A stretch of 64,000 bases of DNA, taken from contig VJWM01000178.1 of assembly GCA_010909165.1 (NCBI GenBank), forward strand, positions 410,656 to 474,655, written 5' to 3'. Positions 16,401-63,567 of the stretch are shown here, piece after piece. Position 1 is the first letter of the stretch, and the number at the start of each line of letters is the position of its first letter. The notes under the pieces are model-generated. The model saw only the letters and a list, made by a program, of their open reading frames with translations, was not told the origin of the DNA and ran no database searches. The DNA comes from Anthoceros angustus (Eukaryota; Plantae; Anthocerotophyta). The translations under genes were made by a program, and so were the position numbers.

Positions 16401-16691
16401 CATCACCACCAAAGCATGGACACGGCGACCCACAACCGGATCCCTCTGAGTTTCACACCTTTTTATGACAGCACGAAAAAGAGATTGAGCAATACAACAG
16501 TCTATCTGCACCAGAACTCCCAGAGCCTCCGCAGCTTCATTGAGCTGCCCCTGCTGACATAGATGGCTCACAGTTTCAGCCGTCACGTCCCACTGATATC
16601 CTGCAGCGCTGAATTTGAGGTCCGCCATCCCACCAACTTTCCTTGGCCGCCACAGTTGTCGCCCACTCCGTAGCTGAAGTGCAATACCCAT
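13413..16691 (-). CDS. Intronless PLS-class PPR protein, about 8 PLS triplets plus E1/E2 and a WW-type PG box, without a DYW domain
   Basis: The 1122-aa ORF starts at TTG 16781, with the first ATG at 16691. It has repeated VTWTALIAGYSQQG / TFVCLLQACA / LVNMYAKCGS units, then YTCMVDLLGRAG and KQPGQSWWTDLDG. Confidence 0.95.
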   Translation of the reverse strand: MGIALQLRSGRQLWRPRKVGGMADLKFSAAGYQWDVTAETVSHLCQQGQLNEAAEALGVLVQIDCCIAQSLFRAVIKRCETQRDPVVGRRVHALVVMKGYESDTFLCNHIMRMYAAHALLAEMMDVFTVAAKPDAFMWSSVISANVRHGKPEQAIQLYKRMRRSGVKPDGHVFVAALQACARGADLKTGQQVHADVLASGSDHSLFVCNALVDMYAKCDSLEDAQKVFDGLGRKDIVTWNAIIAGYSQQGLGWEALRLYSAMEEEVTASPTSVTFLCLLQACASVGSPGLAIGKQLHSRISEGGYEADVFVANSLVNMYAKCGSLEDAQRVFDGLGNKNVVTWTALLGGYLQQGMAQEALCLYSAMQKEGTAVPDAVTFASLLQACASVGGPALEKGRQLHAQIGEQGLETEVLLGCSLVNMYAKCGSLDDAQVVFDRLGQKNVVTWTALIAGYSQRGMGHDALRLYSMMQEGGVAAPDSVTFVCLLQACASVGTSALDKGRQLHAQIREQGHQVDDFIANCLVNMYAKCGSLGDAQRVFDGLTQKDVVTWTALLAGYSKQGMGQEALLLYSAMQEEGVTVPDCVTFVSLLQACASVGNRALAEGKQLHAEIRQRGLQADVILGSSLVNMYAKCGSMEDAQAVFDGLGQRNIVTWTALIAGYSQNGMGQEALRRYNTMQEEGLAVPVGLTFVYLLQACACVGPPALDKGKELHAQIKERGLQADLFIASSLVNMYAKCGSLEDSQGVFDGLCEKNVVTWTTLIAGYSQQGMGQEALCLYSAMADEGVVAPDSFTYTCLLQACGNGAALHMGKQLHAQIKEQGLQADVLVARSLINMYGKSGSMFDAQHVFEALPEKDVVTWNALIAGYTRQGDSEVVFDLFCRMREDDIQPSSITFLSVLTVCSHAGLVDKGREYFEAMRKDYGISPTVEHYTCMVDLLGRAGQLNESLALIRAMPVQANAAVWHTLLNACRKWGNVEVGCHAFDEAVKLDKKDAAAYVLMSSIYTGAQMWDHAQEMQVRRIGYGAWKQPGQSWWTDLDGLVHGFLVGDTKHLEIGGVATCKAQRDVFHLEQGGELLHLEGDKFSKTHTSGA

Positions 16692-16811
16692 GATTTCCAC
16701 AGGCACAGCCAACACCTGTGACGACGTGATTGAACCCGACGGAACCCAGCTTTTGGCGGCCGGCTGGACTAGCTGAGCCAATTACAGTGTCCATGTCCAG
16801 ATACGCTACCA

Positions 16812-26935: not shown

Positions 26936-27018
<83 letters not shown>
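26936..27018. repeat. (GGCCAGA)n heptamer array, about 12 copies
   Basis: Direct reading of the sequence. Confidence 0.97.
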
Positions 27019-28110
27019 GGGCCAGGGGCTGGCCAGAGGCGAGCGGCCTGCCTCCGATTCCCGACAGCGAGGGAGAGTAAAATGAAACGACCCGGACCCG
27101 TGCACGTGCTGGTCGCTCAACTACTGTACTCTTGTACTGGCGGAAGTTACTGGGAGCAGCCATGGCCAAAATGGCATTGTCTTGTGTCACCTGGGCCCCT
27201 TGGACTCCCGACCCTTCCCTCCCTTATTTGTCGCACCCCGGTCCTGGGGACCCGACTCCGCCTCCCAGATGCGCCTGCCCTGCCCCTGCCCCTGCCCCCG
27301 GCCCTGCAGTGCCGGGACCTGGACCTGGACTTGGACCTGGGCCATTTCGGGGCTGCTGCCGCGGCCCCCTCCCTGACTCCGCACTCTCACGTACATCTAG
27401 CCTCCGGCAGCGTGGTGGTGTGGGATTGCGTGCTCTTTTGTGTTGTTGGGCAACGTCCGTTGCTTGCTCTGTGTTGTGTTTTTGCCTTGGCCACCAGGCT
27501 TGCGGTGTTGGGTGTTGTGGATCTGTGCCCCAGCCTGCTCGGGCTCCCTCTCTGCCTGCATGCAGCAAGGAGTGCAGGAAAGGGAAAAGGCAGAGGGAAA
27601 GACGGGAATTGGGGGCTTGCTGCCTGCTCTGGGGCCGGCGCTTCTCTTTGCAGCTTTCTGGATGTGGGATCCTGTCTCGGGGCAGCTGCTTCCGAGCGGC
27701 CACCAAGTCGCACATGAGCGTCCGGGCGGGCTCGCCGGGTGTGTGCATGGCGGGGAATTGGGGGCGGGGGTGAGCGGATAATTCGAGGCTGGTGTCTCTG
27801 CAGATCTCCCGGTGGGTGTGCGCGCGGGAAGGAGCATGGAGAGCGACGCGGGTGGGGCTGGGAGGGGCGCAGGAGGGGAGGGGCAGGGAGGACCGGGAAA
27901 AGGGAAAAGGAAAGGGCTGGTGGTGGGGATCGCCGCGGTCGTGTTGGTTGGAGTTGGAGGAGATTCTTGGCCGGGCTTTGGAAATTGAAGAGGCGGTCGG
28001 CGGGAAGGATGTGGTGGGGAGGCGATTGTGAGCGGGGACGCGGCGGCCAAGTTGGGGAAGTCGTCGGAGGACTTGGCTTCTGCCGCCTTGGGGTCCGCCT
28101 TGCAGGATGA

Positions 28111-29640
28111 GTGGGACGGGAAGGGGTGGGGAGGGAGAGTGATGGCGGCTTGGTGGGTGAGGGGCAGGTGAAGGGCTTTGTGGTGAATGGGACGTTCCGG
28201 GAGAAGGATGGAGTGCCCAGTTTGTGTGCTGAGGTGAAGGTTTTGGGAGTGAAGCGTGGTGTGGATGGGGAGGAAGGGGGGAATGGGCATGTTGAGGTGG
28301 CGGAGAATGGAGTGCAGGTTGTGGGTGGTGGGGGGGAGGAGGTTGTTGGACAGGTGGAGGATGAGCTGCTGTTGCCTGAAGCTGCTGTCAAGGATGGGTT
28401 GGCGGATTTGAGGATTGTTACTTCTGTGTCGTATCCTGATAGCCTGGTGGAGGCGACTTGTACTGCTGTGGGGCGAGATGTTGGGAGTGCGTACCAGAGT
28501 TCGTCCTCTGGCAGTGAGGTGGATGAGGAAGATGAGGATGAGGAGGGGGAGGTGGAGGTGGAGAGCACCAGTGTAATTTTACCTCAGGAGCAGGAGGAGG
28601 ACGCCAGCAGTTCGCTTTCGCCTGAGGATGACGAGGGGAGCAGCACTCCCATCGAGCCTGCTTTGCTGGAAAGTGTTGACAAACGAGAGGTGTTTGTTGG
28701 GGATGGCAGTCCTTCCGTCAGCTCTGTGGAGAAGGTGAAGGATAGCATAGCAACTTCTCTACAGACTGCCCACCCGCTACTTCTTTCCCCCAGGAAGCCG
28801 CCTCGTTCGCCATCACCAACCCCCTCCAGGTTGCAAAGCGAGAGATCCGCTGACAGGAGTTCTAAGGTCTTGGATCCAGATCTCATCTCTAGTCATCTGC
28901 TTCACCCGAGGGCTTCTCCTCCTGCGGCTGTCACCCACCTTCTGGACCTGTTGCAGCTACCGGAGACGGCAGTAGCCCAGCCCACCACTCCAGCAAGGGA
29001 ATCGGAGAAGGTGTTCTCTGTGAAGCCAGCCTCACCATTGAGCGATGGTGAGTCTGCGGTAGAGAAAGATGCTCTTCCCGAAAAAGAGGCAGAGAGCGAT
29101 GGTGAGTCTGCGGTAGAGAAAGAGGCTCTTCCTGATAAAAAGGCAGAGCGCGATGGTGTGTCTGCGGTAGAGAAAGATGCTCTTCCTGAAAAAGAGGCAG
29201 AGAGCGATGCTGAGTCTGCGGTAGGGAAAGATGCTCCTCCTGAAAAAAAGGCAGAGACGGAGAAATTTGTCATGCCAGCAGACGGCTTTAAGGAGGCCTT
29301 GAAGGCCGACTCTGAAGCCAGAGACGTTGTTGCCCAGCTGCTCGTGGATGATGCAAAGGAAAGGGAAACGCTGGAAAGAGTTGCTCTCAAAGAGTCGAGC
29401 AACATAGGCGAGGAGGTCCGACCAGGAGTGGTGGTCTCCGCTTCTAAGGTTTTGCTGGACACTCACAACTCGTCTGTCCGGGCTGTGAAGGCAACCATCG
29501 TTGCAGCTCCAGCATTTGACCTCGACAGGCAGCCAAGTGGAGAGTTTTGGGCCTACGTAGGTCGTGGCGTGCCCTCGTTGATATTGCTGGGCGTTTTTTG
29601 CCTCGTATTGTCGCTTTTGTATCAAGTGTTCCAAGCTTGA
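28111..29640 (+). CDS. Uncharacterised acidic, low-complexity protein with a C-terminal TM anchor; true start lies upstream
   Basis: 509-aa open frame ending EFWAYVGRGVPSLILLGVFCLVLSLLYQVFQA*. There is no ATG near its 5' end, and coding-like text continues upstream through frame changes at G-runs. Confidence 0.7.
   Translation: MGREGVGRESDGGLVGEGQVKGFVVNGTFREKDGVPSLCAEVKVLGVKRGVDGEEGGNGHVEVAENGVQVVGGGGEEVVGQVEDELLLPEAAVKDGLADLRIVTSVSYPDSLVEATCTAVGRDVGSAYQSSSSGSEVDEEDEDEEGEVEVESTSVILPQEQEEDASSSLSPEDDEGSSTPIEPALLESVDKREVFVGDGSPSVSSVEKVKDSIATSLQTAHPLLLSPRKPPRSPSPTPSRLQSERSADRSSKVLDPDLISSHLLHPRASPPAAVTHLLDLLQLPETAVAQPTTPARESEKVFSVKPASPLSDGESAVEKDALPEKEAESDGESAVEKEALPDKKAERDGVSAVEKDALPEKEAESDAESAVGKDAPPEKKAETEKFVMPADGFKEALKADSEARDVVAQLLVDDAKERETLERVALKESSNIGEEVRPGVVVSASKVLLDTHNSSVRAVKATIVAAPAFDLDRQPSGEFWAYVGRGVPSLILLGVFCLVLSLLYQVFQA
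29041..29256 (+). repeat. 54-bp coding tandem repeat x4 (SDGESAVEKDALPEKEAE)
   Basis: Units start at 29041, 29095, 29149 and 29203. Confidence 0.93.
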
Positions 29641-30022
29641 ATGTGGTCCATTAGAAGAGCTTTGACTGAAGCTTTTGCCAGGACTGGACTTGTCGTGTTG
29701 TTGTTGTCTCATGCCTTCCCTTGCGGTCTTGCTCGGGTTGTGTGATTTGTTTGAAGCTAAGTTAGTGATGGGGAATAGCTTGCTTCTGTCCATCTAAAAG
29801 GATAATGCATTTGTATGGCCTGTTCGTTGAGAAATCGTGGCTGTCTGAGCCCCTAAACCGATGGCCATTTCCGTGGGTGCCCTCCAAATTTTGGCAAACA
29901 GAAGAAAGCACTCTTACAGCCTTTTCCCGTCCGCTCGTCCAACTAGTCCTCCCGTCGTGAAATCGGTGACGGTCACGTTTGTCGTTGTGTAGCGCACCTC
30001 CAGAGTACGGTTGGGTTCTTTC

Positions 30023-46383: not shown

Positions 46384-46628
46384 ATAGCCTTTCAGTTTAC
46401 TCGAGTTAGCTCGTTACATGAACGGCTATTAGGTAGTTTAGTATTTCCAGCTAGACTGACAGTTATTAAACCGCTCTCTCTACAAGCATGTATAAGTATC
46501 CTTCTGCTTCATTAATACACTACTCGCTCTTTTCTTGGTACACACGTGAGCTCGTGTCCTTCCGTCTCTCTCTCGCGCGTTTGGCTCTGGCCACCGCCAT
46601 GATCCAACAAGCAATCCTAATTGCTTTA
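46384..46628 (+). repeat. Copia 5' LTR (conserved core)
   Basis: Matches 54526-54767 and is followed directly by the PBS. Confidence 0.9.
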
Positions 46629-46641
46629 TGGTATCAGAGCC
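46629..46641 (+). other. Primer binding site (tRNA-iMet)
   Basis: TGGTATCAGAGCC. Confidence 0.92.
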
Positions 46642-49600
46642 ATCTTTGGGCGTGCGTGATGGATGTCAATGCTCCTAATGCATCCTAATCTAGGCGCCCT
46701 GGAGTCACGATGCCAAGACGAGGAAATTCACCTCCTTTTCCGAGATCCTTCAGCAAACCAGTGAAGCGTCCTACCTTTGTGTGTTCGGAGCATCAAGTGG
46801 TTTGCCTCGATTGCAGATCTTCGGAGAGAAGGGAGGCAGCGCCAACTGGAAGGAATCGCGATTGCCGCCAGCATTTTTCTGTGGTCACACCTGCACTCAC
46901 TCGTGTGACGCAGAGCGCACATTTTCCTCGGACATCCACATCTCCAAGACGCACTTTTGAGGGCGAGACAGTTGACCAGGACGAACTTTCAGCCTTACGG
47001 GAGCACAACACATCACAGTGGATTCTCATCGAAAAGCTCACAGACGGCATTCACAATCTCAATCAGTTGTGTGGAGAGCTTTCGAAGTTGGAGCCTACAC
47101 CTATGCCTGCCAACTCTTCTCGGAGACGTCCACAAGTGCAACGCACCATGCTGTGAGCATATCTTCTGTTTATGTCGGAAAGCTCAAACTCAGATGATGA
47201 ATTTGTTGACGACATTTCATCCCTCTTTGCTGATCCTTCCACATATTCTCCCCAGAGAACTTACGACAGATAGATAGACAGCGTCAACTTCAGTTGGTCT
47301 TGAATAGTCTTCTAAGGCCTGTTGCTCCTGTCAACATGGCCACAAATCCTGCTCCTTTGAAGATAGAATTCAAGGACAAGGATAGGTTCAATGGCACAGA
47401 TTATAATATCTGGGTCATGAGGCTAACTCAAATATTTGAGGAGCATGAGCTGATGTCAGTCGTGGACGGCACAGACCCCAAGGTCACAATACCTGCTAGA
47501 AGTGCAGACGAGATCCTAGCTTGGGAGCGGAAGGATCGTCGTGCTCGCTCTATTCTCATTGCTGCCTTAGATAAAACCATGATGCCTCATACAATAGGAG
47601 CCAAGACTTCCACAGCAGTTTGGGAAGTCTTCCAGTCTATCTATCGGGACAAGAGTTCAGCCTCCCTTGTGCATGCGCACAGAGACTTTTTCAACCTAAG
47701 GATGCGAGACAATGAGCCTGTTGAGGCCTACATCAACAAGTTTCGCACATCACGGGCTAATCTTGCCTTTTGTGGCACTGTGCTGTCAGAAGTTCAAGCA
47801 GCCATTAGCCTCCTGGCTTCACTCCCAGAAAGTTATCAGTATTTTGTGGCCATCCAGAATGCCACAATCAACTCTGCGGTGCAAGTGACAGCTTCTGGTC
47901 AAACACCCAAGGTAACGCTTGAGGATGTTATTGGAGCCCTTATTTCGAGGAGCGACTGAGCTTCGAAGCAAAAGGGTTCTACTTCGAATACCGTACTATT
48001 CACCTCAAGAGGACGGAGGCTTTCGTGGTAGGCGGAGGACGTGGCTCACACACCACCACGCACGATTGGCAACAACAACAACAAGACGTTTGTTTGCAAT
48101 TGGTGCAAAATTCGGCACTATGAGCAGGACGTATAGAAGAAGGGAGGAGAACCTCGGCGTGATCATCCTCCGAAAGCAACGTCACCATCGAGGCTAAGCA
48201 GCCCACTATCCTAGCGATGCACTGTCATCTACACAAGTGCACCACGATACTTGGTTTTAGATTCGAGCAACTAGTCACATTTGCTTTCATAGGCGTGCTG
48301 TCTTTTACTCCATTATTCCAAGCGGTTGTGTTGCTAGGGGATGATAGTGGGCTTTCGATCAAGGGTTCGGGATCAGTTGTCATCACTTTACCTGATTCTT
48401 CCAACCTCACTCTTACAGACGTGCTTTATGTCCCATCTATGACTAAGAATCTCATGTCTGTCTTGAAACTCTCACAGGAACATAGTTGCAAAGTGTGTTT
48501 CGATCATCAAGGGTGCTCCATCACCAGTACCAGGTCAGGTCTAGATCTCTTTTCAAGGTCTCCTTTCCATGATCTGTACCTTTTGAATGTCAAGAGCTTT
48601 TGGTTTACATACCGACATGCCACGTAAATTCTCGCTACATGCCTATGGCACGCTGCTAGGGCATGTCAACTCCCTGGGTACTCTAGTGAAAGGTGAGAGT
48701 TACCGAGAGCCTTTGGATTTTCCTTTTGACAAACATGCCTTTTGTGAGGCTTGTCAACTCAGTAAAGCCCACTCACTCCCTTTCTCGGATAAGGCTCCTA
48801 GCCGTGCTGATGGGTTGCTCCACACAGTTCATAGTGACATCTGCGGCCCTATGTCCACTAGCTCGTTTGGAGGGGCAGATTATTTTCTCACATTCATCGA
48901 CGAGTGGAGTCGGTATTGTGTGGTGTATCTGCTTCGGCACAAGAGTGAAGCACTTGACTATTTTCAGTCCTACGTTCAGTTTGCACAAAGACAGACTTCA
49001 AGCAAGGTGCGCATCCTACGAACAGATAACGGGGGTGAGTACACGAGCCATGCATTTGCTGCTTTCTGCGAGAAGGAAGGTATTCTTCATCACCAGCCCA
49101 TATACTAGAGCGTAATGCTTTTCGAGCGCAAAAGAACTTTGCAAGAAGCCACTTTGGCTTCTCTCATCTTTGGACTCACCGTGGGTATTCAAGCTTTGGT
49201 GGCGACCAACTATGTTCGAATCGCCCACCAAGGAACTTGGTTCCATTACTCCCTATGAGCGATGGACTGTAGAAGCCTCGAGTTGACATCTGCGCATCTT
49301 TGGGTCACCAGCTTATGCCCTTGTTCCACCAGCCTTGCGCTCCAAGCTTGATCCCAAGGCATCCCGTCATGTTTTCGTCGGCTATTCTGAAGAGGTGAAG
49401 GGCTACAAACTTTTCAACCCTTTCACTCGGCACCTCACTTTGTCACGGAGTGTGATTTTTCATGAGGCTGCCTTACTTCGCCGACATGCTGCTTTGCACC
49501 CGGATGCCACTCCTCTGCCTGCTTCCATCATTGATATTGAGGATTCTCCTACTGATGAAACTAACGAGCCGAGTTTCTTTGATGATGAGGATGACTCTTC

Positions 49601-50458
49601 TTCGGATCAAGGGGGGACAGCTCTAGCAGCACAGGCTCCTCCAGCTTCTGATGACAACAATGACCCTGAGGATATCACACCTCCACCCTCTCCAAGCCAT
49701 AATGATGAAAATCCACGTACACCTGTTAATGGTGATGCTGATCTGGTTGAGCCTGTAGATGCCCAGGTCGAGGAGTCTGATCCTGAAGAAGAGACCCCTC
49801 CTCTTCGTCGTTCTGCCCGCATACGTCGCCCCATGCATGAGTGGCAAGATCCTCAATACCGGTGGGCAAGCATGGTAACCTCTGACTTGTCTACTGCAGT
49901 TGTACTTAGTGTGTCTTCCTCTTTAGGTGAACCACTACTTACAAAGAAGCCTTAGAAGGCCCTGAGGCCTCTTTTTGGCAAGCTGCTATGGACTCAGAAT
50001 ACAATTCTCTCATTCAGAACAAAACTTGGAAGCTTGTAGATCTCCCTCCAGGTAGAAAACCAGTTGCATGCAAGTGGGTCTTTAAGAAAAAATTGAATAC
50101 TGATGGAACTGTTGGTAGAAACAAGGCCCGCCTTGTTGCCAAGGGCTACAGCCAGATTCCTGGACTCGACTTCAACGAAACCTTTGCCCCACGTCAAGTC
50201 CACCTCTGTAAGGATCCTGTTAGCCCTAGCTGTCCATTATAACCTTCTTGTACACCAACTGGATGTCAAAACAGCCTTTCTGAATGGCCTTCTGGAGGAA
50301 GATATCTACATGAGCCAGCCGGAGGGTTTTGTCATTGACAAGGACAAAGTGTGCAAGCTGCTCAAGACACTTTATGGTCTCAAACAGGCATCTCGTGCAT
50401 GGTATGAGGTATTCCATAAGCTTTTGATGGAACTAGGCTTCAACGGCATTTCCAGGAT

Positions 50459-53005
50459 ACGTATTTGATACCGGAAGCCCACAAGGGAGGGATCATTCCG
50501 GCAGTTCAGTTCTCCAAGAATCAGATCCCGGAGGAGGTTATGAGCATGTTCCTACGACCAAAGGAGGAAGTATGGTCGCAAGGCAATGGCTGGAGGATCT
50601 CTTTGTTCAAGGATTCTCGCCCATGGCTATGGACAATCTTGCGATTGCACACAGAGACCGCTTGAGATATGCTCACACGCTGGGGCTCATGGAAGCCCAA
50701 GGCCGTGGAAATTCGCAGTGAGATTATGTGTACCTACAACACGACTGCCAAGCACATTAGATGTCAAGACCGGTTGATTCTCGGTGGTAAATGTGGGTGA
50801 GCAAGGAGTAGTGGAACTCAAGGACGGATGGCGAAGATGCAAGGAGCATATGAAACATTTAGCTCCATGTCACTTGCCAAATCTTGATGCAAGAATTGTT
50901 CCTCAAACGTGGTACCACGGATTTGCCTGTGAGGCATGCGGGCACACGGATGAAGAGCTTATGCTCTTATGTGACAGTAACAGAGGCTATCATATTTTCT
51001 CGCACACTTAAAGGATATTCCAGAAGGGAATTGCATGTGAACACCGTGATTCAACAAGTTTGCATGCGCCCATGGCTCTATCTACCGAGAGTAATGAAGA
51101 AGAAGTACGCTGCACCGAACAGAGTTGAGAGTAACACTCAAGACAACTCGTGTTGGAATGGGTACAAGAGGACGAGAGCAAATGACAGCGGTTGCAAAAG
51201 AGGAAAGTTCGCATGAGCGATCTTGCCAATCGAATTCCTTGTTGCCAAGGCCAAGCGCCAACAAGGCACATGAGGGTGCCGCTATTCTTGAAGAGTGCCT
51301 TCAGAATCACTCACCGCTTGCGCAGCTTGCTCCTCCGAGGAATTTAGTGACACCAAGGCCAGAAGTGGAATTTATTCGCCAAGATATGGCCGACTAACGG
51401 CAAGGAAGACGACTGGAAATTCCCATTTAATGATGATGTATGAGATGTCTCGTGGAAGTTGGTGGATTGGGCCACCATTCTCAGATGAACAAAGTGCGCA
51501 CCGAAACCACTTGGTGATGGAGGGAGCAAGAATCGCTTTGTCTCTACCTTCCTCGTACACCTATATCGGAGGAGGAGGTTCTTACACCGACGATTGGAAG
51601 AAGCCAAGATAGAAGCTACTCCGGTGAGGTAGCGGAAGGAGAGCCACCGCCCCGAGGATGAAGAGACGGATGAGGCCCCGGGCAAGAGACCGCCACGCCT
51701 GAACCAACATGAGGCCTCGTGGATCGTGAACCAACAAGAGAAAGGGAAGAAGGCTATAGAAGCACCTCCTACGGAGGAAGGAGGAAAGGATACGAGACCA
51801 CCTACCGAGGGTTGAGGATTGAATACAACACCGTGGTAGGAGTGAACCCCACCAGAGGGACCTGTGGAGGACGGAGGACCTACAGGAGCTTTACCTCCCA
51901 CCAAGAAGTAGTAACAAGACTTGAGGCGGTGTGACGAGAAGAACGAGGAACGCTTGGTGACCCACGCACCAAGGAGGAGCAGAGGGAAGTGTTCGAGAAT
52001 GCCGGCATCCCATGAGGTAGTTGCCGAGTGAAGGAAGTGGGCGCAGGATCTATGGACGCCCTAGTGGACCGTGTCGGAGGTGACCAAGTTCGTCCGAACT
52101 TCGAGACCTACGAAGGAGCCGGAGGATGCCGAGAAGAAATTGAGAGGAGCTCGAAACCACCTCCGAGAAGCAACACTGCGCTAGATCCGCCAAAGAGCGA
52201 CAGGATGACCACCAAGTTGGTGAATGTGGGAAATGATTGACCAGGTCTTAGGACAGGAGGCAAAATCAGCCAAGAGGGCTGAGGAGTTGGAAGCTGCCAG
52301 GAAGGAGGCAGAAGGAAAGTTGGAAGCTACCCTAGCAAGGGTAGGACACATCGAACGCAGCAAGGAGGAGGCAGCATCTACAGCTAGCAAGGCCCGGCGG
52401 GACCTTGAAGACGAGAAGGACCTCCTACGAAAGAAGTTAGTTGCCATGGAGCAACGGAAGGAGCATTACAAGGGAAAATACGACAGCTTGGTGAAGGAAC
52501 GACAAGGATGGGACAATGTGACTAAGGGTCACAAAGAGGAGCTCAGACACGAGAGAACTTTTGGAGCGAAGAAGAAGGACGACCTACCCACGCCTTATGA
52601 AACGGAGGCAAGGAACCGCCGGAAGGAGGTTTTGATGGATCTTTGGAGGGTCTTCAAAGTCATTCGAGGGAGGCGAGCGATCACGCTATAGTGAAACGAG
52701 CGATGGAAGCCATGGAGAAAGATAAGGAGATTGGGAGGCTTGCCCCGGAGTTGGAGAGAGCGGTAGTGGAGAAAGAGGCCGCATTGGTAGGAGTGATCTC
52801 AAGCCGTGGGACGAAGCGTCATCCCACTAAGGGTCCGCATCATGGACGACAAAAGAAGGAGAGTGGTAGGGTGGCGACCTACACAACAACCTCCCGAAGC
52901 GATTGAGGAACGCCAGTGAGGAAGACGGCAGACCTCAGCTCGACGCCAAGTGGAATAGTGCACCACGGAGGTCAAACTTTGAGTTGGTACAAGGGAAGCC
53001 AGGAT
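50459..53005 (+). mobile_element. 2.5-kb insert inside the Copia RT, containing the PHD-Gypsy 3' region and a coiled-coil ORF relic
   Basis: CCAGGAT is present at both junctions (50452-50458 and 52999-53005). Segment ~50610-51362 aligns to ~60465-61216. Confidence 0.85.
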
Positions 53006-54525
53006 GCGGACACAAGTGTTTATATCCTGTGGGATGGGGCGGATTTCTTGATCCTCACTGTCTATGTTGACGACAACTTTCTATTCAGCAACTCTGCTGC
53101 CCTTATGGCCGTATCAAGCTGATTCTTCTTTCTAAGTTCGATATGACTGACCTAGGAGAACTCACCTTTTCCCTGGGTGTTCAGTTTCATTTCAACAGGA
53201 CTGATGGCACCATTGATATACATCAAGAGCACTTTGTGCATCAGCTTCTGCAGCGCTTCAACATGGAAGATGCGAAGCCTGTAGCTACACCCATGTCTTT
53301 AGGTGAGAAGCTCTCCTTAGAACAGTGCCCTGCTACTAAGGAGGACAAACGAGCCATGGCCAATATTCCTTACAGACAGGCTGTCGGCTCCCTCATTTAT
53401 CTCTCCAGCTGGACCCGTATGGACATTACCCGGGCAGTGGGAGCTGTAAGCCAGTTCTTGGAGAATCCTGGCCCATCTCATTGGACTGTTGTTAAACGGA
53501 TTTTTAGATATTTAAAAGGGACACCTAGGACGGGGCTGAGGTTTTCTAGGTGTAAGGCAGGTCTGGATCTCACAGCTTATTGCGATGCCGATTGGGCGGG
53601 GGATCCCGACACCAGGAAATCTACGCTCGCACCTTTCTGGTACCTCAGCTTCATGGAATGTCAGCAAGTCGGAGAGGAGGAGTCTTGTGTCCACTGATGA
53701 CAACATTGCTGACCTTCTCACGAAGGCTCTTCCTAAACCTGTTCATGAGAAGCACACTGCCTCTGCTGGAATTAGTGAAATTCCAGCTGTAGCTGTTAAG
53801 GGTACTGCCCATTAGAGTTTGCTGCTTCTAATTCTCCAGTGGGAGTTTGCCTTGTTTTGTGAGTGTTTTCTTCAGGTCTTCCCTTGCCTTGTCGATTTTT
53901 GCGATTCTTCACCGTATGCACACCTGAATGTCAGCATCACAACTCTGTCAAGTTTCATGCATGCTAGCACCTGTATCCCACTTCCTGTCACGTGTGGTGC
54001 AGGTTTCTCCTTTCCTTTCTTAGGAGTCTTAGTGTCTTCCACATCTTCAGTCCCCGTTGCTGTCTCCTTCACACTCTTGGAACCCGTAGAAGGTGTGGGA
54101 TGCAAAGCCACACCTGTCACTCCCTTCCTGCTCTTGCTTTTAGTGTCCTTGCAGCTCATCTTGTGGAACTCTGCCGAGGGAGCTGCAAACACCTTCCGAG
54201 GAGAGCCCTTGTTGTCGAAGTTCTAGAGCCGGCGAACTGTCTTGGGCTTGGAACTGTCCTTCGGAAGTGGAGCCGAGCTAGGAGAGTAAAAGAACACGAT
54301 GTTCGAAGTTGGACAGTGCAACGCGTGAAGGCATGATTGGCGCTCCGAAAATTTCAGCACTGGAATCCAAATCCTGAGGAGCTGAGGACTGAAGTGAGCT
54401 AGAACGTGATCTCGTTTTGCATGTGTTTCGAGGCAATTATTCTCAACCTGCTACGGGCTTATGCGAAGGAAGGACATTTAGCTTCTGCCACGCTGAAAAT
54501 CGCAACTAAGTGGAGTATTGGGAAT

Positions 54526-54767
54526 ATAGCCTTCGATTTACTCGAGGCTCGCCACATGAACGGGCTATTAGGTAGTTTAGTATTTCCAGCCAGACGCGCT
54601 TATTAAACCGCTCTCTCTACAAGCATGTATAAGTATCCTTCTGCTTCATCAATACACTACTCGCTCTTTTCGTGGTACACACGTGAGCTCGTGTCCTTCC
54701 GTCTCTCTCTCGCGCGTTTGGCTCTGGCCACCGCCCATGATCCAACAAGCAATCCTAATTGCTTTTA
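54526..54767 (+). repeat. Copia 3' LTR (conserved core)
   Basis: Matches 46384-46628. Confidence 0.9.
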
Positions 54768-57164
54768 GGCTCCACCAGATAAGCTGAATGACTTCTGATG
54801 GATAGGAATTCTACCATCGATTTCACGCAGCTTCGTTGTAGTCCGAATCTGACCATTACTGAATTGGCTAGGCTCACTAGGCAGTCCGCATATGTGGGAG
54901 CGCTCGATAGAAACCAGACACTGCTGTTTTCTTAGCTAGTTGGGGTTGGGAGGATTGCCGTTGACAACATTCCTCGATTGTCAAGCATAGGCGGTTCGGT
55001 ATTTTGAGGTCAGTGGAGAGGGACACACTCCGTCATCGCTAGAAAGGGACAAGATCACGGATCACCTTTCAAAAGGGCGCTGACCAAGACAGACAACACG
55101 CCCATCACGAGATCTCAGTTTGGAGACTGGAGCAAAGAGCCGATTCAAATGGAGCTGGAGAGTACGCCCAGCAAGAATGATGTTTTCACCGGAAAACATG
55201 GGAGTATGTCATTGGCGGATTTTGAAGAGAAGTTCCGCTGGGGAATGGCAGAAAACAAGATGAAGTACAAGGATCGTTCACCCAGAATGGCACTCATGAA
55301 GATGTCGAATATCTCGCGGTGAGGCGTTGATGTACTGAGACGAAGAAGGACATCTTGGCATCGGCGGAGAAGTGAGGCTTGCGGAGGAGTTGCGGCAAGC
55401 CACTCACTCCGTCAAGGAAGACGAGCTAGAGCATTTGGTTGATCTCATGTTTGAAAGATTGAAGGACATGTTTCCAACATCGTCCTTGGAGAAGATTCAG
55501 AGTGACGTTTTAGCTTCAAGTCCAATGAGGGCTCATACATCGGTCAAGATCTTGGTGGAGGACACGGATGTGAAGACCATGCGGAGGCTGCTGAAATTTT
55601 CATGGCTGCGATGCCACAGACGAAGGAAGGTAATGGATGCTCTTCATGGTGCTCATGGAGAAAAGTATGGGACGCCTACAAGATTGCGGAGAAGGTGCTA
55701 AAAGGGGATGCTGTCAGTCAAGCATACCTGGAGGATCACAATTTGATCAGAAGCAGCACTTCTTACGGCTCTGGACAAGGAGGATCCAGATTCCAGCATA
55801 AGGGCCGGTGTGAAGCGATTTGGGTCAAATCAAACCCAGTCACGAAGGAGAGACCCGGCCGTCAGGGCCATCAAATGTGGCAGGTGCCGTGGTGCACATA
55901 AGTCATTTGAATGTGACTTCAGACCTAGAGGCCCGAAGGGCAAGGAGGTTTGCAAGGCTTGTGGTCGATGGGGCCACATAGAAGCCGCATGTTGGGAGGC
56001 TCATCCAGAGCTCAAGCCCAAGGTAATGGGCGTGAAAAGGAGAAGGGCAAAGGCCCTAGTCGCAAGGCTCTTCTTGCGCAAGTTGAAGAGATGCGAGATG
56101 GCTAACATGGCGGCGGTAGTCACGCATTCTTTCTCGACTCGGATGAAGAAGTGTATGGCATGGCGATTCGCAAGAAAAGAAGAAGACCGCACTTGACCTC
56201 GGAGAAGGGTTCGCCAAGGACACGTCGAACGAGCAAAGCAAAATGCCCGAAAGTTTTAGGCAAGTGATGATGGTACTTGCGGTGGCTTCTAACCGAGGTG
56301 GATGTAGAAGCACGTTGGAGAAGGCCATGGAGGTTCCTGGTCAATTTCGGAACTTGGACTCAAGAGTTCACATTTCAAGAAGATCATGAGGGAATGGATC
56401 AGAAAGAGATAGAACCGAGAAGTCCTTCGCTTGATGTGCTGCGAGGAGACCATCTAAAGCCGAACGTCGGTAAAGGAGGTGTTGCCATGATTGACAACCG
56501 GAAATTACCTTTGACGGTTTGCACGATCAATGTCTTTGGTGGACACCGGAGCGATCCAAGATTGTTGGGAGCTCGTGTGCGCTCAGCTATGGCGCAAGCT
56601 GGTACCAAGCGATGTAAGCATCACTACTTCGAACGAAGGAAATGGTGATGGGATGACCAGAAACCGATCAAGATCGAGTTGAAGCCGAGCCAGAGGATGC
56701 AACCACAATGGAGGAGGTTGGTGACTGTGCCACGTCCTACGATGTGTTGTTAGGGGCGGATGCTACACATGGCCCGCCATGGGAGTTGATCCATATGAAG
56801 AAGCCTTCTATCGACCGTGGAAGCAAGGGATTTCGCGGTGCAACTATTCCCGAACATGAGCAAAAGTGGCGGAAGGAGCGAAGGCGTGAGCCCAAGCGCG
56901 CGAGATGGTCGAAGGCGGATGGCTTCCTGCTCAAATTGAGCAGGCGGAGGGGAGGAGGAGGAATTGTCCTCTCGGGAAGCACCAAAACCCGGCGGAAGGA
57001 GTGCTGATCGCGCTCGAGCACCTTGAGGAGGCAAGGGTTCGAGAAAATCACGAAAGGAGAATCGCCTGGAATCTCCGACACATGTCCGAGAGATCCATAC
57101 CAAACATGAAGCCCAGACGGAGGGAAGGCGAATCAATGATTCGTATGCGATGGAGCAAGTTCAA

Positions 57165-58030
57165 GGAATTCACTTGTTGGAATTGTGCTCGTGAATCGGA
57201 TTGAGGCGGTGCTTCAATGTGGCATCAAGGTTTGCGCTACACATGTGGAAAAGGACGAGAAGGCTAGAGTCGTGGCGGTAATTCTCGGGTTGTGCAATTA
57301 TTTCCATCTCTGTAAGAGAAGACGCAGTGAGAGGTTGTCGAGCAGCTGCCCACGGATCAAGCTTGTGGGAAGGAAGCAACAAGCTCCTCGTCGATGGATA
57401 TGATCATCGCAGATGGGAGTGTAAGACCTTCTCGCGAAAGAGGAAAGGCGAAGGTGTTTCCCTTCGCGGTCGCGTGGTTGTCGAGGAGGTTCAACTTGTG
57501 AATCCCGGATCTTTGGTACATCGAAAACGTGTGTGGAGCGTTGGACAAACGTCGTAACGATGTATGAGGAGGTCCGATCATGGTTCGGCAATGAGCTGGT
57601 CATTGATGCTGTGTGGCTCTTACGCGCACAGGATTCGCAGTTATTGGACCAATGTTGCAGGACTTGAGACACTGAGGCAACACAGAACACTCATGGTTCC
57701 ATCACGGAAGACCGTTAGTGAAATCCTGGAACCAGAAAGGTACTCGCAGCAAGTCAAGAAGATGGACAAACTTCCGTTTTATCCAGTGAACAGAGTTGGT
57801 GAAGCCAGGAGGGCATGGCCGACTTTGGTAAGTACGCCACAATCCTACGCATTCAGGCGAGGAGGAGATGGCATGATCCTAGACTCAAGGGAGGAGCTAG
57901 GAGAGCTCAATGTTGAGGAACGGACAAGCCATGGGTTTGCCAAGAAGGGTACACGAGACCATGGGTGTGAGTGAGGCGTCAAACACAAGTTCGGGACAGC
58001 ATTCGATCTATGACTTAAGGTGGTTAGTGA
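57165..58030 (+). pseudogene. C5 DNA cytosine methyltransferase domain within Gypsy pol (frameshifted)
   Basis: Motifs are in canonical order: I HLLELCS*IG then EAVLQCGIKV..HVEKDEKAR; IV DMIIA(G)WECKTFS; VI YIENV; VIII IDA..GSYAHRIRSYWTN; IX EER..AMG; X G(Q/T)AFDL. Confidence 0.85.
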
Positions 58031-60773
58031 GTCGGATTGGCATTTCGGTTGGCGAGGTGAAGGAAAAGAGCCACTTGCTAGCGAGATGGAAAGCCGGCAG
58101 AGGCGGATGAAAGGGAAGGAACCCAAGACACGTTCGGCATGGCTGCTGTGGAAACAGAGTTTGTAACCAAGAGTGTCACCAAGGAGGTTCACGTCTGGAA
58201 GATTGATGAAGATGTCAGTCCAGAAGACAAGCAAAAGATCATCGACATGCTCGAGAAAAACAAAGGTGCTTTTGCATTCAGTTGGAATGAGCTAGGGAGG
58301 TATGAAAAGATCAAGTTCAAGATTGTTACCACCAGCTCTGAGCCTATCTTCAGGAGAAGGCATAGGTTGAGTCCAGCAGAGTGGGAGATTGTGGACAAGC
58401 GTTGTCAGGAGCTGTTTGAGGCAGGATTGATTCGTAAATCAAGCTCGAGTATGTCAGCAACTCCTCCAAAGAAGGACGAAAATGGCGAGTGGAAAGATAG
58501 GCGAATGTGGGGACTATCGACCTCTCAACGAGTAACGTTGATGGAGCGGTATCCCATGCCTACTCCGGATGAGATTTTTGATGCAATTGGTAAGGCAAAG
58601 TACTTACCACTTTGGATTTCCTCGTTTCAATCGATTGTGATTGAGGAGCAAGACAAGAGCAAAACGGCTGGGAAAGGATCAGCTTTGGGAATGGGAGACT
58701 ATGCCCTGAAAAATGCTTCCATATATTTCCGGAGAATTGCGACTTGGAGTGCAGGATCCGCCGTTTGCGTTGTTACACATCCTAGTTTTCAGCGACACCA
58801 TCGAGGAACACATGGATCATCCGAGACTCTGCAAAGATTGTCCAAATCAGCTTGAAAGCTCATCCGAAAAGTGCAAATTTGCATTCGGATTGAGTATCTT
58901 GGACATGAAATTGTGCAGGAGGAATCATGCCGATTGGCTAAGGTGCAGGTGTGATGCGATGCCTAGGCCCAAGGATGTGGCAGCCTTAGAGCATTTCGGT
59001 TGGTGAACTACTACGGAGGTTTATGAAAGACCTCACACATGCAAACCCTTGTATGAGATGTCAAGAAGGAGGTAACTTGGAAATGGGATCAAGAACGAGC
59101 TAGCCGGCAAGATCTAAGGGATCAATGGTGAGAAGCCCATCTTGTAGACAGACTTTGAGAAGCCGCTTTGTTCATACGGATTGAGCAGGATAGGAGCGAT
59201 GTCACATCGATGCGAAGGAATGGAGCGAGTTGTGGCTTATGCAAGCGATCCAACAATTCAGAGGTAAACTACTCCTCATATGAAGGAGAGTGTCTTGCTG
59301 CAGTGTGGGCAATGTTGCATTTAATTTGGAAGGCGTTTCCAGTTGGTGACGGATCATCAACCACTTCATTGGCTCATGACCAACATGAAGTTGAGCGGGA
59401 AACTGGCCAGGTGGGCATTGCTGCTGTCCGAATATGACATGGAGATCGTGCATAGGCGCAAGGTGCACCACAATGCATGGTTTGAGTAGGAATCCATGCA
59501 AATCGGCGATGCCGGGCACGACAGATTTGGGACACATGGAAAATGTGCCCAGGCTTTCATGGCACTCATGGCGATCGAAGGTGAAGCAGGAGGAGAGCCG
59601 GATCTTAGTCATCGGGGACATGAGGCATTCACAAGCGTTGCGGCTCAAAGAAGGCAGTACCTAATGTCGTGCGAAACAAGCCCAGAGTGGCGGATACTCA
59701 TGGCGGATGGAGATGCTGAAGGAGAGGTTGTAAAGAAGGTGCCAAGTCCAAGAAAGAAAGGATTGTGATTAAAGTGCATGAAACACTAGGTCACTTTGGT
59801 GTAAAAGGACACACCACATGCTGAAGACCACATATTTCGGTCCCATGTATGCGAGATGTGGAAAGAGTGGTGGCTAGCGCGTGTGATGCAGTGAAGGCTA
59901 GATTTAACACACAAGATGTTGTGTTACACTCTTTACCAATCCGGGTTTGTTTCTTTGGTCGGTGGACTTGATGCCGGAACTACCATTGACAAAGCAAGGA
60001 AATCGTCCGATGGTGATGATTGAGCACTTCTCCAAGTGGGTGGAGGTAGCATTTTCGCCTCAAAGAACCTCATATTACACCAGAGCCTTTGGTGTGTACT
60101 AAATTGGAAGTGCGGGTGCTCACCGATCAAGGCAATGAATTGAGGAGAATTCGGCGTTCGGATGTGTTTGATTGATCACGGAGAACGTCCAGGATCATCC
60201 TCAAGGTGATGGTTTGGCGGAGAGGTTGGTTCGACATTCAAGGACGCCTCAAATCTTGCATCACCATGGAACCCAAGTCGGATGAATTACTTCCTATATT
60301 GTGTTGGGTTATAGAGTGAGTGTAGCATTGGGAAGCTTTCCTTACTTTACATTGTTCGGAAGGAATGCGCTTTGCCCAATGTGGTGCAGACAAATATTCT
60401 ACTCAGAGATTGGAGTAGGAATATGGAGGTGCTTACGGCAAGTGCAAGCTAGAGCGTAAATGTTCAAGGATTCGCCCATGGCTATGGACAATCTTGCGAT
60501 TGCACCGCAGACCAGCTTGAGATATGCTCACACAGGGGCTCATGGAAGCCCAAGGCCGAGTTCGCACAGAGATTATGTGTACCTACAACAGACGGCACAT
60601 TAGATGTCGACCTAGGTTGATTCTCGGTGGTGGTAAATGTGGGAGAGCAAGGAGTAGTGGAACTCGAAGGACGGGATGGCAGAAGGTTCAAGAAACATTT
60701 AGCTCCATGTCACTTGCCAAATCTTGATGCAAGAATTGTTCCCCAAACGTGGGTACCACCAGCGGACTTGCCC

Positions 60774-60908
60774 TGTGAGGCATGCGGGCACACCACGGAT
60801 GAAGAGCTTATGCTCTTATGTGACAGGTGCAACAGAGGCTATCATATTTTCTGTCTCACACCTGCATTAAAGGATATTCCAGAAGGGAATTGGCTGTGTG
60901 AACACTGT
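60774..60908 (+). other. PHD finger at the C-terminus of the Gypsy integrase
   Basis: CEACGHTTDEELMLLCDRCNRGYHIFCLTPALKDIPEGNWLCEHC has all C4HC3 ligands and lies in an intact frame (60627-60992). Confidence 0.95.
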
Positions 60909-61705
60909 GATTCAACAAGTTTGCATGCAGCCATGGCTCTATCTACCGAGAGTAATGAAGAAGAAATCGTTGACACGAGCGAGTTGGAGTAACACTCCAG
61001 CAACTCGTGTTGGAATGGGTACAAGAGGACGAGAGCGAGAAATGGCAGTTGCAAAGAGGAAAGTTCGTGCGGGCGATCTTGACAAAATTCCTTGTTGCCA
61101 AGGCTAGAAGCGCCAACAAGGCTCATGAGGGTCGCTATTCTTGAAGAGTGCCTCGGGAATCACTCACCCTTTCGTGATTGTCCTTCCTCCGAGGAATTTA
61201 GTGACACCAAGGCCAGTGTGGAAGAGAGCACGGCAAATTGTCTTGCCAGCTGGAGGAGTCTTCCTCAGCTGGGGGGCTCGACAATCACAGAGCAAGTGCT
61301 CGCTTTCTTACAGACTGTGTGCAAAGTTGGTTCAAGTTGGATGGATCGAGTTACGAACCATATGCGGAAGGCAGACCACACAAGCCCTAGCACCAATTAG
61401 CGAAGAAGGTGCAGTGGTGTTGGGTCTGAAGCACCCAAGCGCAAGAGAGGGAGGCCACAGCAGCGGCGGTGAGAGGAGATGGAGGCTCACCAACGCGAGC
61501 GTGGGCGGCGAGAAGCACGAAGCGAGAGATGCCTCAACCCGGGCGTGCAGCACCCACGGCTCGTGATGCAACGCCACAACGTGAGAAGCGGTGCTGCTAG
61601 GACAAGGGGCTCGGGAGGCGAGGGCGGTTTGCTCTCTGAGACACACAAGCGGCATGAGCGACGCAGCCGTCGTCGAGTTGCCGTCTTGAGTAGTGCCACC
61701 AAGGT

Positions 61706-62351: not shown

Positions 62352-63259
62352 CCCCAGAGCCCTCATCTCAATGAGAGAGATACATTTGCTTCCTCCTCTC
62401 CTCTCCTCTTTCCACCATCATGGGCTGCCACGCGATCCTTCAACCAGTATCGTAGCTTTGGTCCGGTTGTGTTGTGATGTTAGAAGATTCTACATGCAGG
62501 CGTGGCAGCGTGGAATGTGATCCATATTATTGTGCGGCGCGAACGCTGCAAGCCGCGAAGCGGGCGAGGCCCATGCTCGGCGCGTCACCGCGAGCGCGCA
62601 GCCAGCGAGCCTTGTGCGCGAGCTGACATAGGCTTGGCTCACCGCGACACGCGCAAGGTCGCGGCGCCGGGCGCCGCGTTCGCCGCTGGCCGGCAAGGCC
62701 TCGCGACGCCCGCGGCGGAGGCCGCGGATCGGGCCGGCGTGGAAGGCCGCAGGCCGGCAGCAAAGCGGTGCAGCCGCGAGGCAGCGACGGCCAGTGGCAG
62801 CGCGTGCTGCGTGCGCGCAGTAGGCGCGGGCGGTGGTGGCAGCGGGCTCCAGCGCAAGCCGCAACAAGCCGGCATGAGCTATGGCCAGTGAGTCACCGCT
62901 GGGGGTGAGAGCGCCCAAGAACCTAGTAGACCTAAATAATCGCGTTGCCGAGCAAGCGGTACCAAATATTCAAATATACTCGGTGACCAATCGGCGTATC
63001 ACATACGGGCCGCACGGTGGTGGGACCCAAGAACGATGGGACCCTCAACGCGTTGGGATTCCCTGAGAGTAAATTTTCAACTCTCGGTGACCCGCCGACA
63101 AGTGAGCCACAAAGATGCATACGGTAAGACAAGGCATAATTACTACAAGAACTTGCGGTTTCTACATTACAAAATAATTTTTGACTTTTCCGACAAGCGA
63201 AGTCAAGTGTTTCGTTTTACGATTTTTGAATCATGATGTCTTCATCATCAGAAAACGTC

Positions 63260-63333
63260 ATGTTCAATATCGAAAAGTTAGATGGTACTAACTTCCCGTT
63301 CTGGAAAGAACACGTGTATAATGTTCTAGTGCA
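63260..63333 (+). mobile_element. Copia gag N-terminal fragment
   Basis: MFNIEKLDGTNFPFWKEHVYNVLVQ. Confidence 0.7.
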
Positions 63334-63567
63334 GGGTGTAAGCATGGTTTGGTGGTACACTTTTGTACCATATGGTTGTGGTACACTTGGTTACTTTTGA
63401 GAGATGAGAGAGAGATGTGAGAGAGTGATGTGAGATAGTCAAAGTTTCACTAAATTAATATTTTTATTCTACTTATACTTATAGTTTTATATCATTGTAG
63501 TTGATTATTTTTATCTTACGTTTACCTTGTCTACTTTTTACATGTTTGAAGGTCACGACCGCTTACC

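Follow-up and report, generated by a model that had tools for sequence, protein, structure and literature searches.

Can a retrotransposon carry its own cytosine methyltransferase within the genome of a land plant, and in which state is such an element found there? The question is raised by a stretch of 64,000 nucleotides from contig VJWM01000178.1 (positions 410,656 to 474,655; in the following called the window, with all positions counted from its first nucleotide), in which motifs of a C5 cytosine DNA methyltransferase (DNMT) lie inside the pol region of a Ty3/gypsy-type element. A retrotransposon with its own cytosine methyltransferase is a rare parasite encoding the mark which hosts use for silencing, and such elements have so far been documented for dinoflagellates and for one streptophyte alga. 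In the latter, Klebsormidium nitens, the gypsy-type element KnitGypsy-Dnmt3 was described with a DNMT3-like domain in Pol (de Mendoza et al. 2018, Nat Commun 9:1341, PMC5890265). The part of the window between 55.9 and 61.0 kb is in all probability a dead copy of a Ty3/gypsy-type element for a polyprotein consisting of gag knuckle, protease (PR), DNMT3-type DNMT, reverse transcriptase (RT), RNase H (RH), integrase (INT) and PHD finger, in which nucleotides 57069-58010 would represent the methyltransferase relic.

The methyltransferase motifs were read directly from the DNA. Motif I, the SAM-binding loop (F-x-G-x-G, and F-D-G-I-A-T-G in DNMT3), is present as ELCS*IG (57180-57200), with a TGA in frame within the motif, and in its longer form LLELCS*IG (57174-57200) it was aligned with the family pattern L-(D/E)-L-F-(S/G)-G-(I/L)-(G/C). 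Motif IV, which contains the catalytic cysteine, consists of DMIIA (57397-57411), two bases, and WECKTFS (57414-57434). Motif VI was identified as YIENV (57517-57531). IDA was read at 57602-57610, and motif VIII as GSYAHRIRSYWTN (57615-57653). Towards the C-terminus, EER was found at about 57915, GQAMG in a different frame, and GTAFDL with its end at 58010. The motifs are spread over three reading frames. Motif VI (ENV) is followed by motif VIII (R-x-R) and then by the EER..G..T / G.A.D signature of the C-terminus, in the canonical order and colinear with positions 1-347 of the family profile. A preliminary description of the locus, made from the nucleotides alone, had quoted these motifs at the same places and in the same order.

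The family profile is a hidden Markov model (HMM) of 386 positions, made from an alignment of the DNMT domains of 22 relatives (alignment A1) with the window left out. With frame changes allowed, the window DNA reached a score of 206.6 bits against this profile. The alignment covers nucleotides 57069-58010 and positions 1-347 of the HMM, and is divided into seven segments which are colinear (Table 1). The N-terminal half is the weaker one. It scored 46.6 bits, compared to 16.1±2.3 bits in dinucleotide shuffles, of which 0 of 500 reached the observed value (z=13), and to 18.3 bits for the reverse complement. A statistic based on chains of tblastn matches was weak for this half (z 2.1 when the maximum over queries was taken, and 0 of 300 when the mean was used), and was superseded there by the profile-based, frame-aware alignment. 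A stop-free piece of 138 amino acids (57558-57971) matched the family HMM with 133.6 bits (E 1e-42). When the same piece was compared by phmmer with 1.84 billion representative proteins, 330 matches with E<1e-3 were obtained, 95 of them with E<1e-10 and the best with E 4.8e-18. The long matches were gypsy polyproteins, which contain PF00145 together with RVT_1, RT_RNaseH, Integrase_H2C2, rve and PHD domains. In the protein atlas, generic C5 methyltransferase clusters were the only ones found. A second DNMT relic was not detected elsewhere in the window, on either strand.

Judged by the family profile, the DNMT domain is nearer to DNMT3 than to other classes of C5 methyltransferases, as had been proposed before. 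Among the proteins of the PDB, the profile matched DNMT3A best (E 7.9e-26), followed by DNMT3B (about 1e-22) and also DNMT3C, and then by DRM (2e-13), M.HhaI (1e-9) and DNMT2 (1e-7). The order of the motifs is common to the family and to the catalytic domain of animal DNMT3A/3B. This includes IDA..SAAHRARYFWGN, to be compared with DAA.FGS.AHR.R.YWTN, the form found in alignment A1. In the same alignment, motif I reads L-(D/E)-L-F-(S/G)-G and motif IV reads (A/G)-G-W-(E/P)-C-Q..S.A-G, with a cysteine that is invariant across the 22 relatives; the remaining motifs are ENV, PTL...SYAFR and ERE.A(M)G..G.T.....R..LG.A.D. Animal DNMT3A/3B, in contrast, are cellular enzymes with PWWP and ADD domains, and their motif IV contains PC, whereas the family of the window has WEC. 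The catalytic cysteine had been correctly located in WEC from the outset, but the form itself had been taken for an oddity, whereas the family alignment shows it to be normal for this lineage. WEC is the commonest form of motif IV in the class with the DNMT between protease and RT, and WPC, PPC, PEC and WDC are present in other members.

The methyltransferase is part of a decayed series of retrotransposon domains. One of the relatives is P0333, encoded on the ENA contig L002 by an intact open reading frame (ORF) of 2358 amino acids, which has exactly the order identified in the window, including the terminal PHD finger (PR 663-711, DNMT 953-1263, RT 1443-1596, RH 1685-1789, INT 1925-2090, PHD 2300-2344). 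Residues 364-456 of P0333 match the region of the zinc knuckles weakly (55855-56160; tblastn, E 0.016). The protease motif LVDTGA is located upstream of the DNMT in the window, as the protease precedes the DNMT in P0333. Further downstream, residues 1342-1796 of P0333 match 58196-59456, and residues 1929-2232 match 59762-60591 (both tblastn), with a gap between RNase H and integrase of only about 285 bp in the window. The PHD finger corresponds to residues 52-96 of the stop-free piece 60621-60989. A second intact element of the same order, P0312 on contig L001, is also colinear with the window (tblastx), and the colinearity of both elements applies to 55855-60947. Against a profile of the whole class (A2), the window reached 741.5 bits over 57108-60698 and positions 1-1320 of 1379, from the DNMT to the integrase. 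Since pol is colinear with this class profile, the DNMT segment is an integral part of the element and not a foreign insertion. The order of protease, RT, RNase H and integrase, with the integrase after the RT, is that of Ty3/gypsy elements, and the DNMT lies inside Pol of a gypsy-type element, as in elements of the KnitGypsy kind. This agrees with the preliminary description, in which a C5 methyltransferase had been placed between protease and RT of such an element. A chromodomain, as in chromoviruses, was not matched by Pfam in the stop-free pieces; the C-terminal module is the PHD finger.

The reading frame of this copy is broken throughout. The DNMT relic alone contains six frame changes, a stop in frame at 57972 and, within motif I, another TGA at 57192; in addition, 37 profile positions are deleted. 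From the DNMT to the integrase (57108-60698), the path through profile A2 requires 34 frame changes and passes 4 in-frame stops; in the element as a whole, in-frame stops are located at 57192, 57972, 59662, 60457 and 60618. As far as can be read from the DNA, the window copy is an inert relic, a pseudogene without an open DNMT frame. Because this frame is broken, the copy cannot methylate anything, and the suggestion that it pre-methylates new copies or alters host chromatin must be abandoned for it; such a function would apply to intact relatives only. The observed/expected ratio of CpG is 0.78 in the element and 0.69 in the window, which is uninformative on a decay driven by methylation.

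The homology to retrotransposon-borne DNMTs, the domain order, the colinearity with intact relatives and the decay of the copy can be regarded as demonstrated. A number of observations nevertheless weigh against the interpretation of the locus as a dead gypsy copy with a DNMT3-type enzyme in pol. PF00145 was not matched by Pfam in ten separate stop-free pieces of the region 56.5-58.9 kb, and the link to the C5 methyltransferases therefore goes via the family profile; in the family alignment, PF00145 was matched by 20 of the 23 members. The 138-amino-acid piece alone matched no chain in the PDB (phmmer), and the assignment of the window to DNMT3 accordingly also goes via the family. On the gag, protease and downstream pieces, Pfam gave no match. 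A pair of direct repeats around 54.8-63.2 kb was found neither in a repeat search nor by blastn, whether run at word size 11 or at word size 7, and a primer-binding site and a target-site duplication were not found for the gypsy copy. The ends of the copy are therefore undefined, and on the 5' side it is adjoined by the long terminal repeat (LTR) of a Copia-type element. The ends have probably been lost or have decayed. In tblastx comparisons with L001 and L002, the regions flanking the coding part gave no matches, and a 123-amino-acid ORF located 3' of the PHD finger in L002 has no counterpart in the window. Glutamate, which in the window and in most PR-DNMT-RT relatives replaces the proline before the catalytic cysteine, is unusual at this place among C5 methyltransferases. 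In the yeast assay reported for KnitGypsy-Dnmt3, the domain gave no methylation, a result called inconclusive by the authors in the article text, where the DIRS-borne DNMT3 of Symbiodinium is reported to be active in yeast (PMC5890265). Finally, 34 frame changes with no more than 4 stops is an unusual proportion, and an odd one for plain neutral decay.

The excess of frame changes over stops would speak for a copy that is intact, or nearly so, with frameshifts that are errors of a long-read assembly in a repeat beyond polishing by short reads; that the frameshifts may be long-read errors had been mentioned in the preliminary description. Repeats are also the sequences most often missed in polishing. 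However, indel errors cannot generate the five stops listed above, and 37 profile positions are gone in the DNMT alone. The junctions at which the frame changes are not enriched in homopolymers (0.38 compared to a background of 0.35 for runs of at least 3, and 0.06 compared to 0.06 for runs of at least 4), and shifts of +1 and -1 are balanced, with 17 of each. In addition, a 3.4-kb ORF for a pentatricopeptide repeat (PPR) protein is unbroken in the same window. Assembly errors are therefore an unlikely source of the broken frames.

The same gene bears on the identity of the host. It is uninterrupted and intronless, and codes for a PPR protein of the PLS class with 1121 amino acids and an E motif. 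Such proteins, of the PLS/E type, are characteristic of land plants. The lycophyte Diphasiastrum provides the best matches among named proteins (43-47% identity), followed by fern, conifer and bryophyte proteins, with none near-identical; the lycophyte and fern matches span 36-47% identity. An intact gene of this type in the window is the main clue to the host and makes a land plant probable, in agreement with what the first inspection had supposed.

The element itself might still not be native to such a host: the contig could be algal contamination, or a green alga could have passed on the family by horizontal transfer in recent times. All named relatives are indeed algal (Closterium, Scenedesmus, Haematococcus and Cymbomonas), and no named land-plant protein was obtained in the protein searches. 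Two word-index protein searches gave neither named land-plant nor Klebsormidium relatives, which is a weak negative, and none of the matches looked up carried the name Klebsormidium. However, the PPR gene with its best matches in lycophytes and ferns lies within the same 64 kb. The deep decay in place and the Copia element abutting the 5' side indicate that the copy is old, and with a best database identity of about 46% no close algal donor is seen. Either of these foreign origins is quite improbable, while an ancient horizontal transfer and vertical descent are indistinguishable with the present data.

Among the database matches, two architectures were identified for elements with this DNMT family. 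The majority has the order RT-RH-DNMT-INT-PHD, and its named members are polyproteins from the chlorophytes Scenedesmus (KAF8056149.1, P0046), Haematococcus (GFH29877.1, P0147) and Cymbomonas (KAK3250090.1, P0099), in addition to P0016 and many metagenome contigs. The minority has the order gag-PR-DNMT-RT-RH-INT, and its named members, among the matches looked up, are all from Closterium species. The window has the minority order. The Closterium polyproteins (CAI7886383.1, CAI7855100.1 and GJP34393.1) and those from metagenomes (P0333/L002, P0312/L001 and P0114) share with the window the domain order, WEC, the DNMT clade and the most similar RT, and P0333 and L001 also share the C-terminal PHD finger. 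They differ from it in their intact ORFs, with 30-47% amino-acid identity to the window. These polyproteins are unannotated database entries, and a description of them as a family was not found in the literature. The chlorophyte polyproteins contain the same DNMT family, as judged from one common alignment, shared motifs and the invariant cysteine, and have the PHD finger after the integrase as in the window; the PHD finger of P0016 is 52% identical to that of the window. In these proteins, however, the DNMT is located between RNase H and integrase instead of between protease and RT, and the RTs are more distant. The module is thus present in two positions of pol across the green lineage. In a limited search, no description of these two positions, or of the Closterium and chlorophyte members, was found in the literature.

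The DNMT and the RT give the same placement. In a tree of 119 DNMT columns (FastTree), the window is located on a long branch in a clade (support 0.85) which consists only of PR-DNMT-RT elements, Closterium included, and of fragments of unknown order. In tblastn, the RT of the window scored 183 bits with P0312 and 133 bits with P0163 of its own class, compared to 45-96 bits with RTs of the other architecture. The RT-RH tree contained three outgroups only, so that the ancestral architecture is not decidable from it. In contigs with intact relatives, L002 (1-18357) and L003 (ENA ERZ25067493), whole elements are arranged in head-to-tail arrays, with a period of 8262 bp and 99.8% identity in L002; in L003, tandem copies are suggested by the gene layout only. 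Such arrays could have arisen when a multi-copy LTR element was assembled, or could be a real tandem or circular form.

The grouping of DNMT and RT also decides against a fragment of a host DNMT3, or a one-off capture, inside an unrelated gypsy relic. In favour of a capture, the window holds one DNMT-bearing copy, and the second copy of the family in it comprises the INT-PHD end only. Yet P0333, P0114, P0294 and the Closterium proteins carry the DNMT at the same place within a single ORF, the DNMT of the window groups with the retrotransposon-borne clade, and the best matches of its RT likewise come from these elements. A heritable module is therefore preferred, and a capture is highly improbable. 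A chance resemblance of motifs in decayed sequence, for which the silence of Pfam on every single piece could be cited, has a negligible probability and is refuted by the colinear profile alignment, the shuffles and the matches of the 138-amino-acid piece.

For intact members of the family, a function of the methyltransferase can be proposed. For two intact relatives from different samples, L001 and L003, a dN/dS of 0.16 was determined over 238 DNMT codons. The DNMT domain of these elements is under purifying selection, and this implies that the module serves the element. A single polyprotein would provide protease, methyltransferase, RT/RNase H and an integrase with a PHD finger. The protease might release the methyltransferase, or leave it fused beside the RT. 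The methyltransferase could then accompany the complementary DNA (cDNA) and the integrase, and methylate cytosines, either in the new copy or in the chromatin close to it; a self-methylation of retrotranscribed DNA was proposed by de Mendoza et al. in the text of their article (PMC5890265). The methyltransferase activity of the lineage is putative and is proposed for the intact relatives only. For the PHD finger, the nearest solved domains are those of CHD4, ATXR5, MLL3, DPF2, KDM5A/B, BHC80, AIRE and UHRF1. The PHD fingers of these proteins mostly read the unmodified histone H3 tail. This resemblance suggests that the PHD finger might tether integration to chromatin unmethylated at lysine 4 of histone H3 (H3K4), comparable to the chromodomains in chromoviruses.

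Table 1. Positions of the gypsy-type element, its DNMT relic and neighbouring features in the window.
Feature	Position	Strand	Evidence or remark
PPR gene	13413-16781	-	Uninterrupted ORF
Overlapping ORFs	27000-29800	both	Several ORFs of 170-509 amino acids, no Pfam match
Copia-type element	46384-54765		244-bp direct repeats 46384-46627 and 54526-54765, 92.7% identical
Second partial copy of the DNMT-gypsy family	50604-51370	+	blastn, 84.8% identity to 60461-61223; direct repeats D1, D2
Gag-like region, two zinc-knuckle-like motifs	55876-55992	+	Read from stop-free piece 55747-56193
Zinc-knuckle-like motif CGRCRGAHKSFEC	55876-55914	+	Direct read
Canonical CX2CX4HX4C knuckle CKACGRWGHIEAAC	55951-55992	+	Direct read
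Aspartic protease active-site motif LVDTGA	56536-56553	+	Direct read
DNMT3-type C5 cytosine methyltransferase relic	57069-58010	+	Motifs I, IV (WEC), VI (ENV), VIII (AHRIRSYW), C-terminal ERE..MG / G.A.D
Alignment segment HMM 1-42	57069-57191	+	Frameshift-aware profile alignment
Alignment segment HMM 46-124	57194-57397	+	Frameshift-aware profile alignment
Alignment segment HMM 125-128	57400-57411	+	Frameshift-aware profile alignment
Alignment segment HMM 130-171	57414-57515	+	Frameshift-aware profile alignment
Alignment segment HMM 173-192	57517-57561	+	Frameshift-aware profile alignment
Alignment segment HMM 193-211	57563-57613	+	Frameshift-aware profile alignment
Alignment segment HMM 212-347	57615-58010	+	Frameshift-aware profile alignment
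RT and RNase H, decayed	58190-59480	+	tblastn P0333 and P0312, tblastx L001, profile A2; RT about 58190-58960, RNase H about 59130-59480 (tblastn and profile mapping)
Integrase, zinc-binding domain and core, decayed	59740-60600	+	tblastn; profile A2 path to 60698
PHD finger, C-terminal end of integrase	60774-60908	+	Pfam PF00628, E 3.8e-12
ORF start resembling the N-terminus of a Copia-type gag	63233-63400	+

The neighbourhood of the gypsy relic contains further mobile elements. In the Copia-type element, gag, integrase and RT are broken. The second copy of the DNMT-gypsy family, 767 bp in length, is located inside this element, at the place where the Copia RT would be expected. It contains only the end of the integrase, the PHD finger, which is matched by P0016 and P0333 (tblastn), and about 230 bp beyond it. 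Just past the gypsy relic another element begins, recognized from the start of its gag-like ORF.

The kind of element described here has already been published, and what may be new is the land-plant host. The literature searches gave no paper in which a retrotransposon with a DNMT is described for a land plant. In the survey table of de Mendoza et al., the numbers of DNMTs listed for Selaginella, Physcomitrella and angiosperms are not expanded (PMC5890265). A 2026 preprint names the kind as "streptophytes (Gypsy-DNMT3)". The decayed copy in a probable land plant, together with the relatives in Closterium, chlorophytes and metagenomes, suggests a greater age and a wider distribution of this lineage among green algae and plants than has been published, and that the DNMT module changed its position in pol at least once. 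It is conceivable, although we put it forward only tentatively, that a multi-copy gypsy family is present, or was present until a fairly recent time, in a land-plant lineage, with a DNMT3-type DNMT and a PHD finger similar to readers of the unmodified H3 tail, and of the same stock as that in the Zygnematophyceae (Closterium). If this were true, retrotransposon-borne DNMTs would have crossed the water-to-land transition, and the module would have moved once within pol, between the orders PR-DNMT-RT and RH-DNMT-INT. If intact copies were present elsewhere in the genome, the action of a transposon-encoded DNMT3 could be studied in a land plant.

Among the known systems, the precedent cited in the preliminary description, KnitGypsy-Dnmt3, was the right one. 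According to the article text, its DNMT3-like domain is unrearranged and lies within the ORF for Pol, and the element is intronless and multi-copy and has a streptophyte host (PMC5890265). Its domain is under purifying selection with a Ka/Ks of <0.2, compared to the value of 0.16 determined here for L001 and L003. The two elements, which were compared by description only, differ in that the host of KnitGypsy-Dnmt3 is an alga, whereas the host of the window is apparently a land plant and the window copy is dead. The terminal repeats of KnitGypsy-Dnmt3 are described as DIRS-like, while none were found in the window, and a PHD finger is unmentioned in the text of that article, whereas the element in the window has one. 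For the PHD finger, a parallel exists in the Chlamydomonas element Gypsy-7a_cRei (Craig et al. 2022, PMC9940879). In this element no DNMT is reported, and the PHD finger is located between RNase H and integrase according to the legend. Like the PHD finger in the window, however, it belongs as an accessory domain to the Gag-Pol polyprotein of a gypsy element from the green lineage, and it was proposed to guide insertion.

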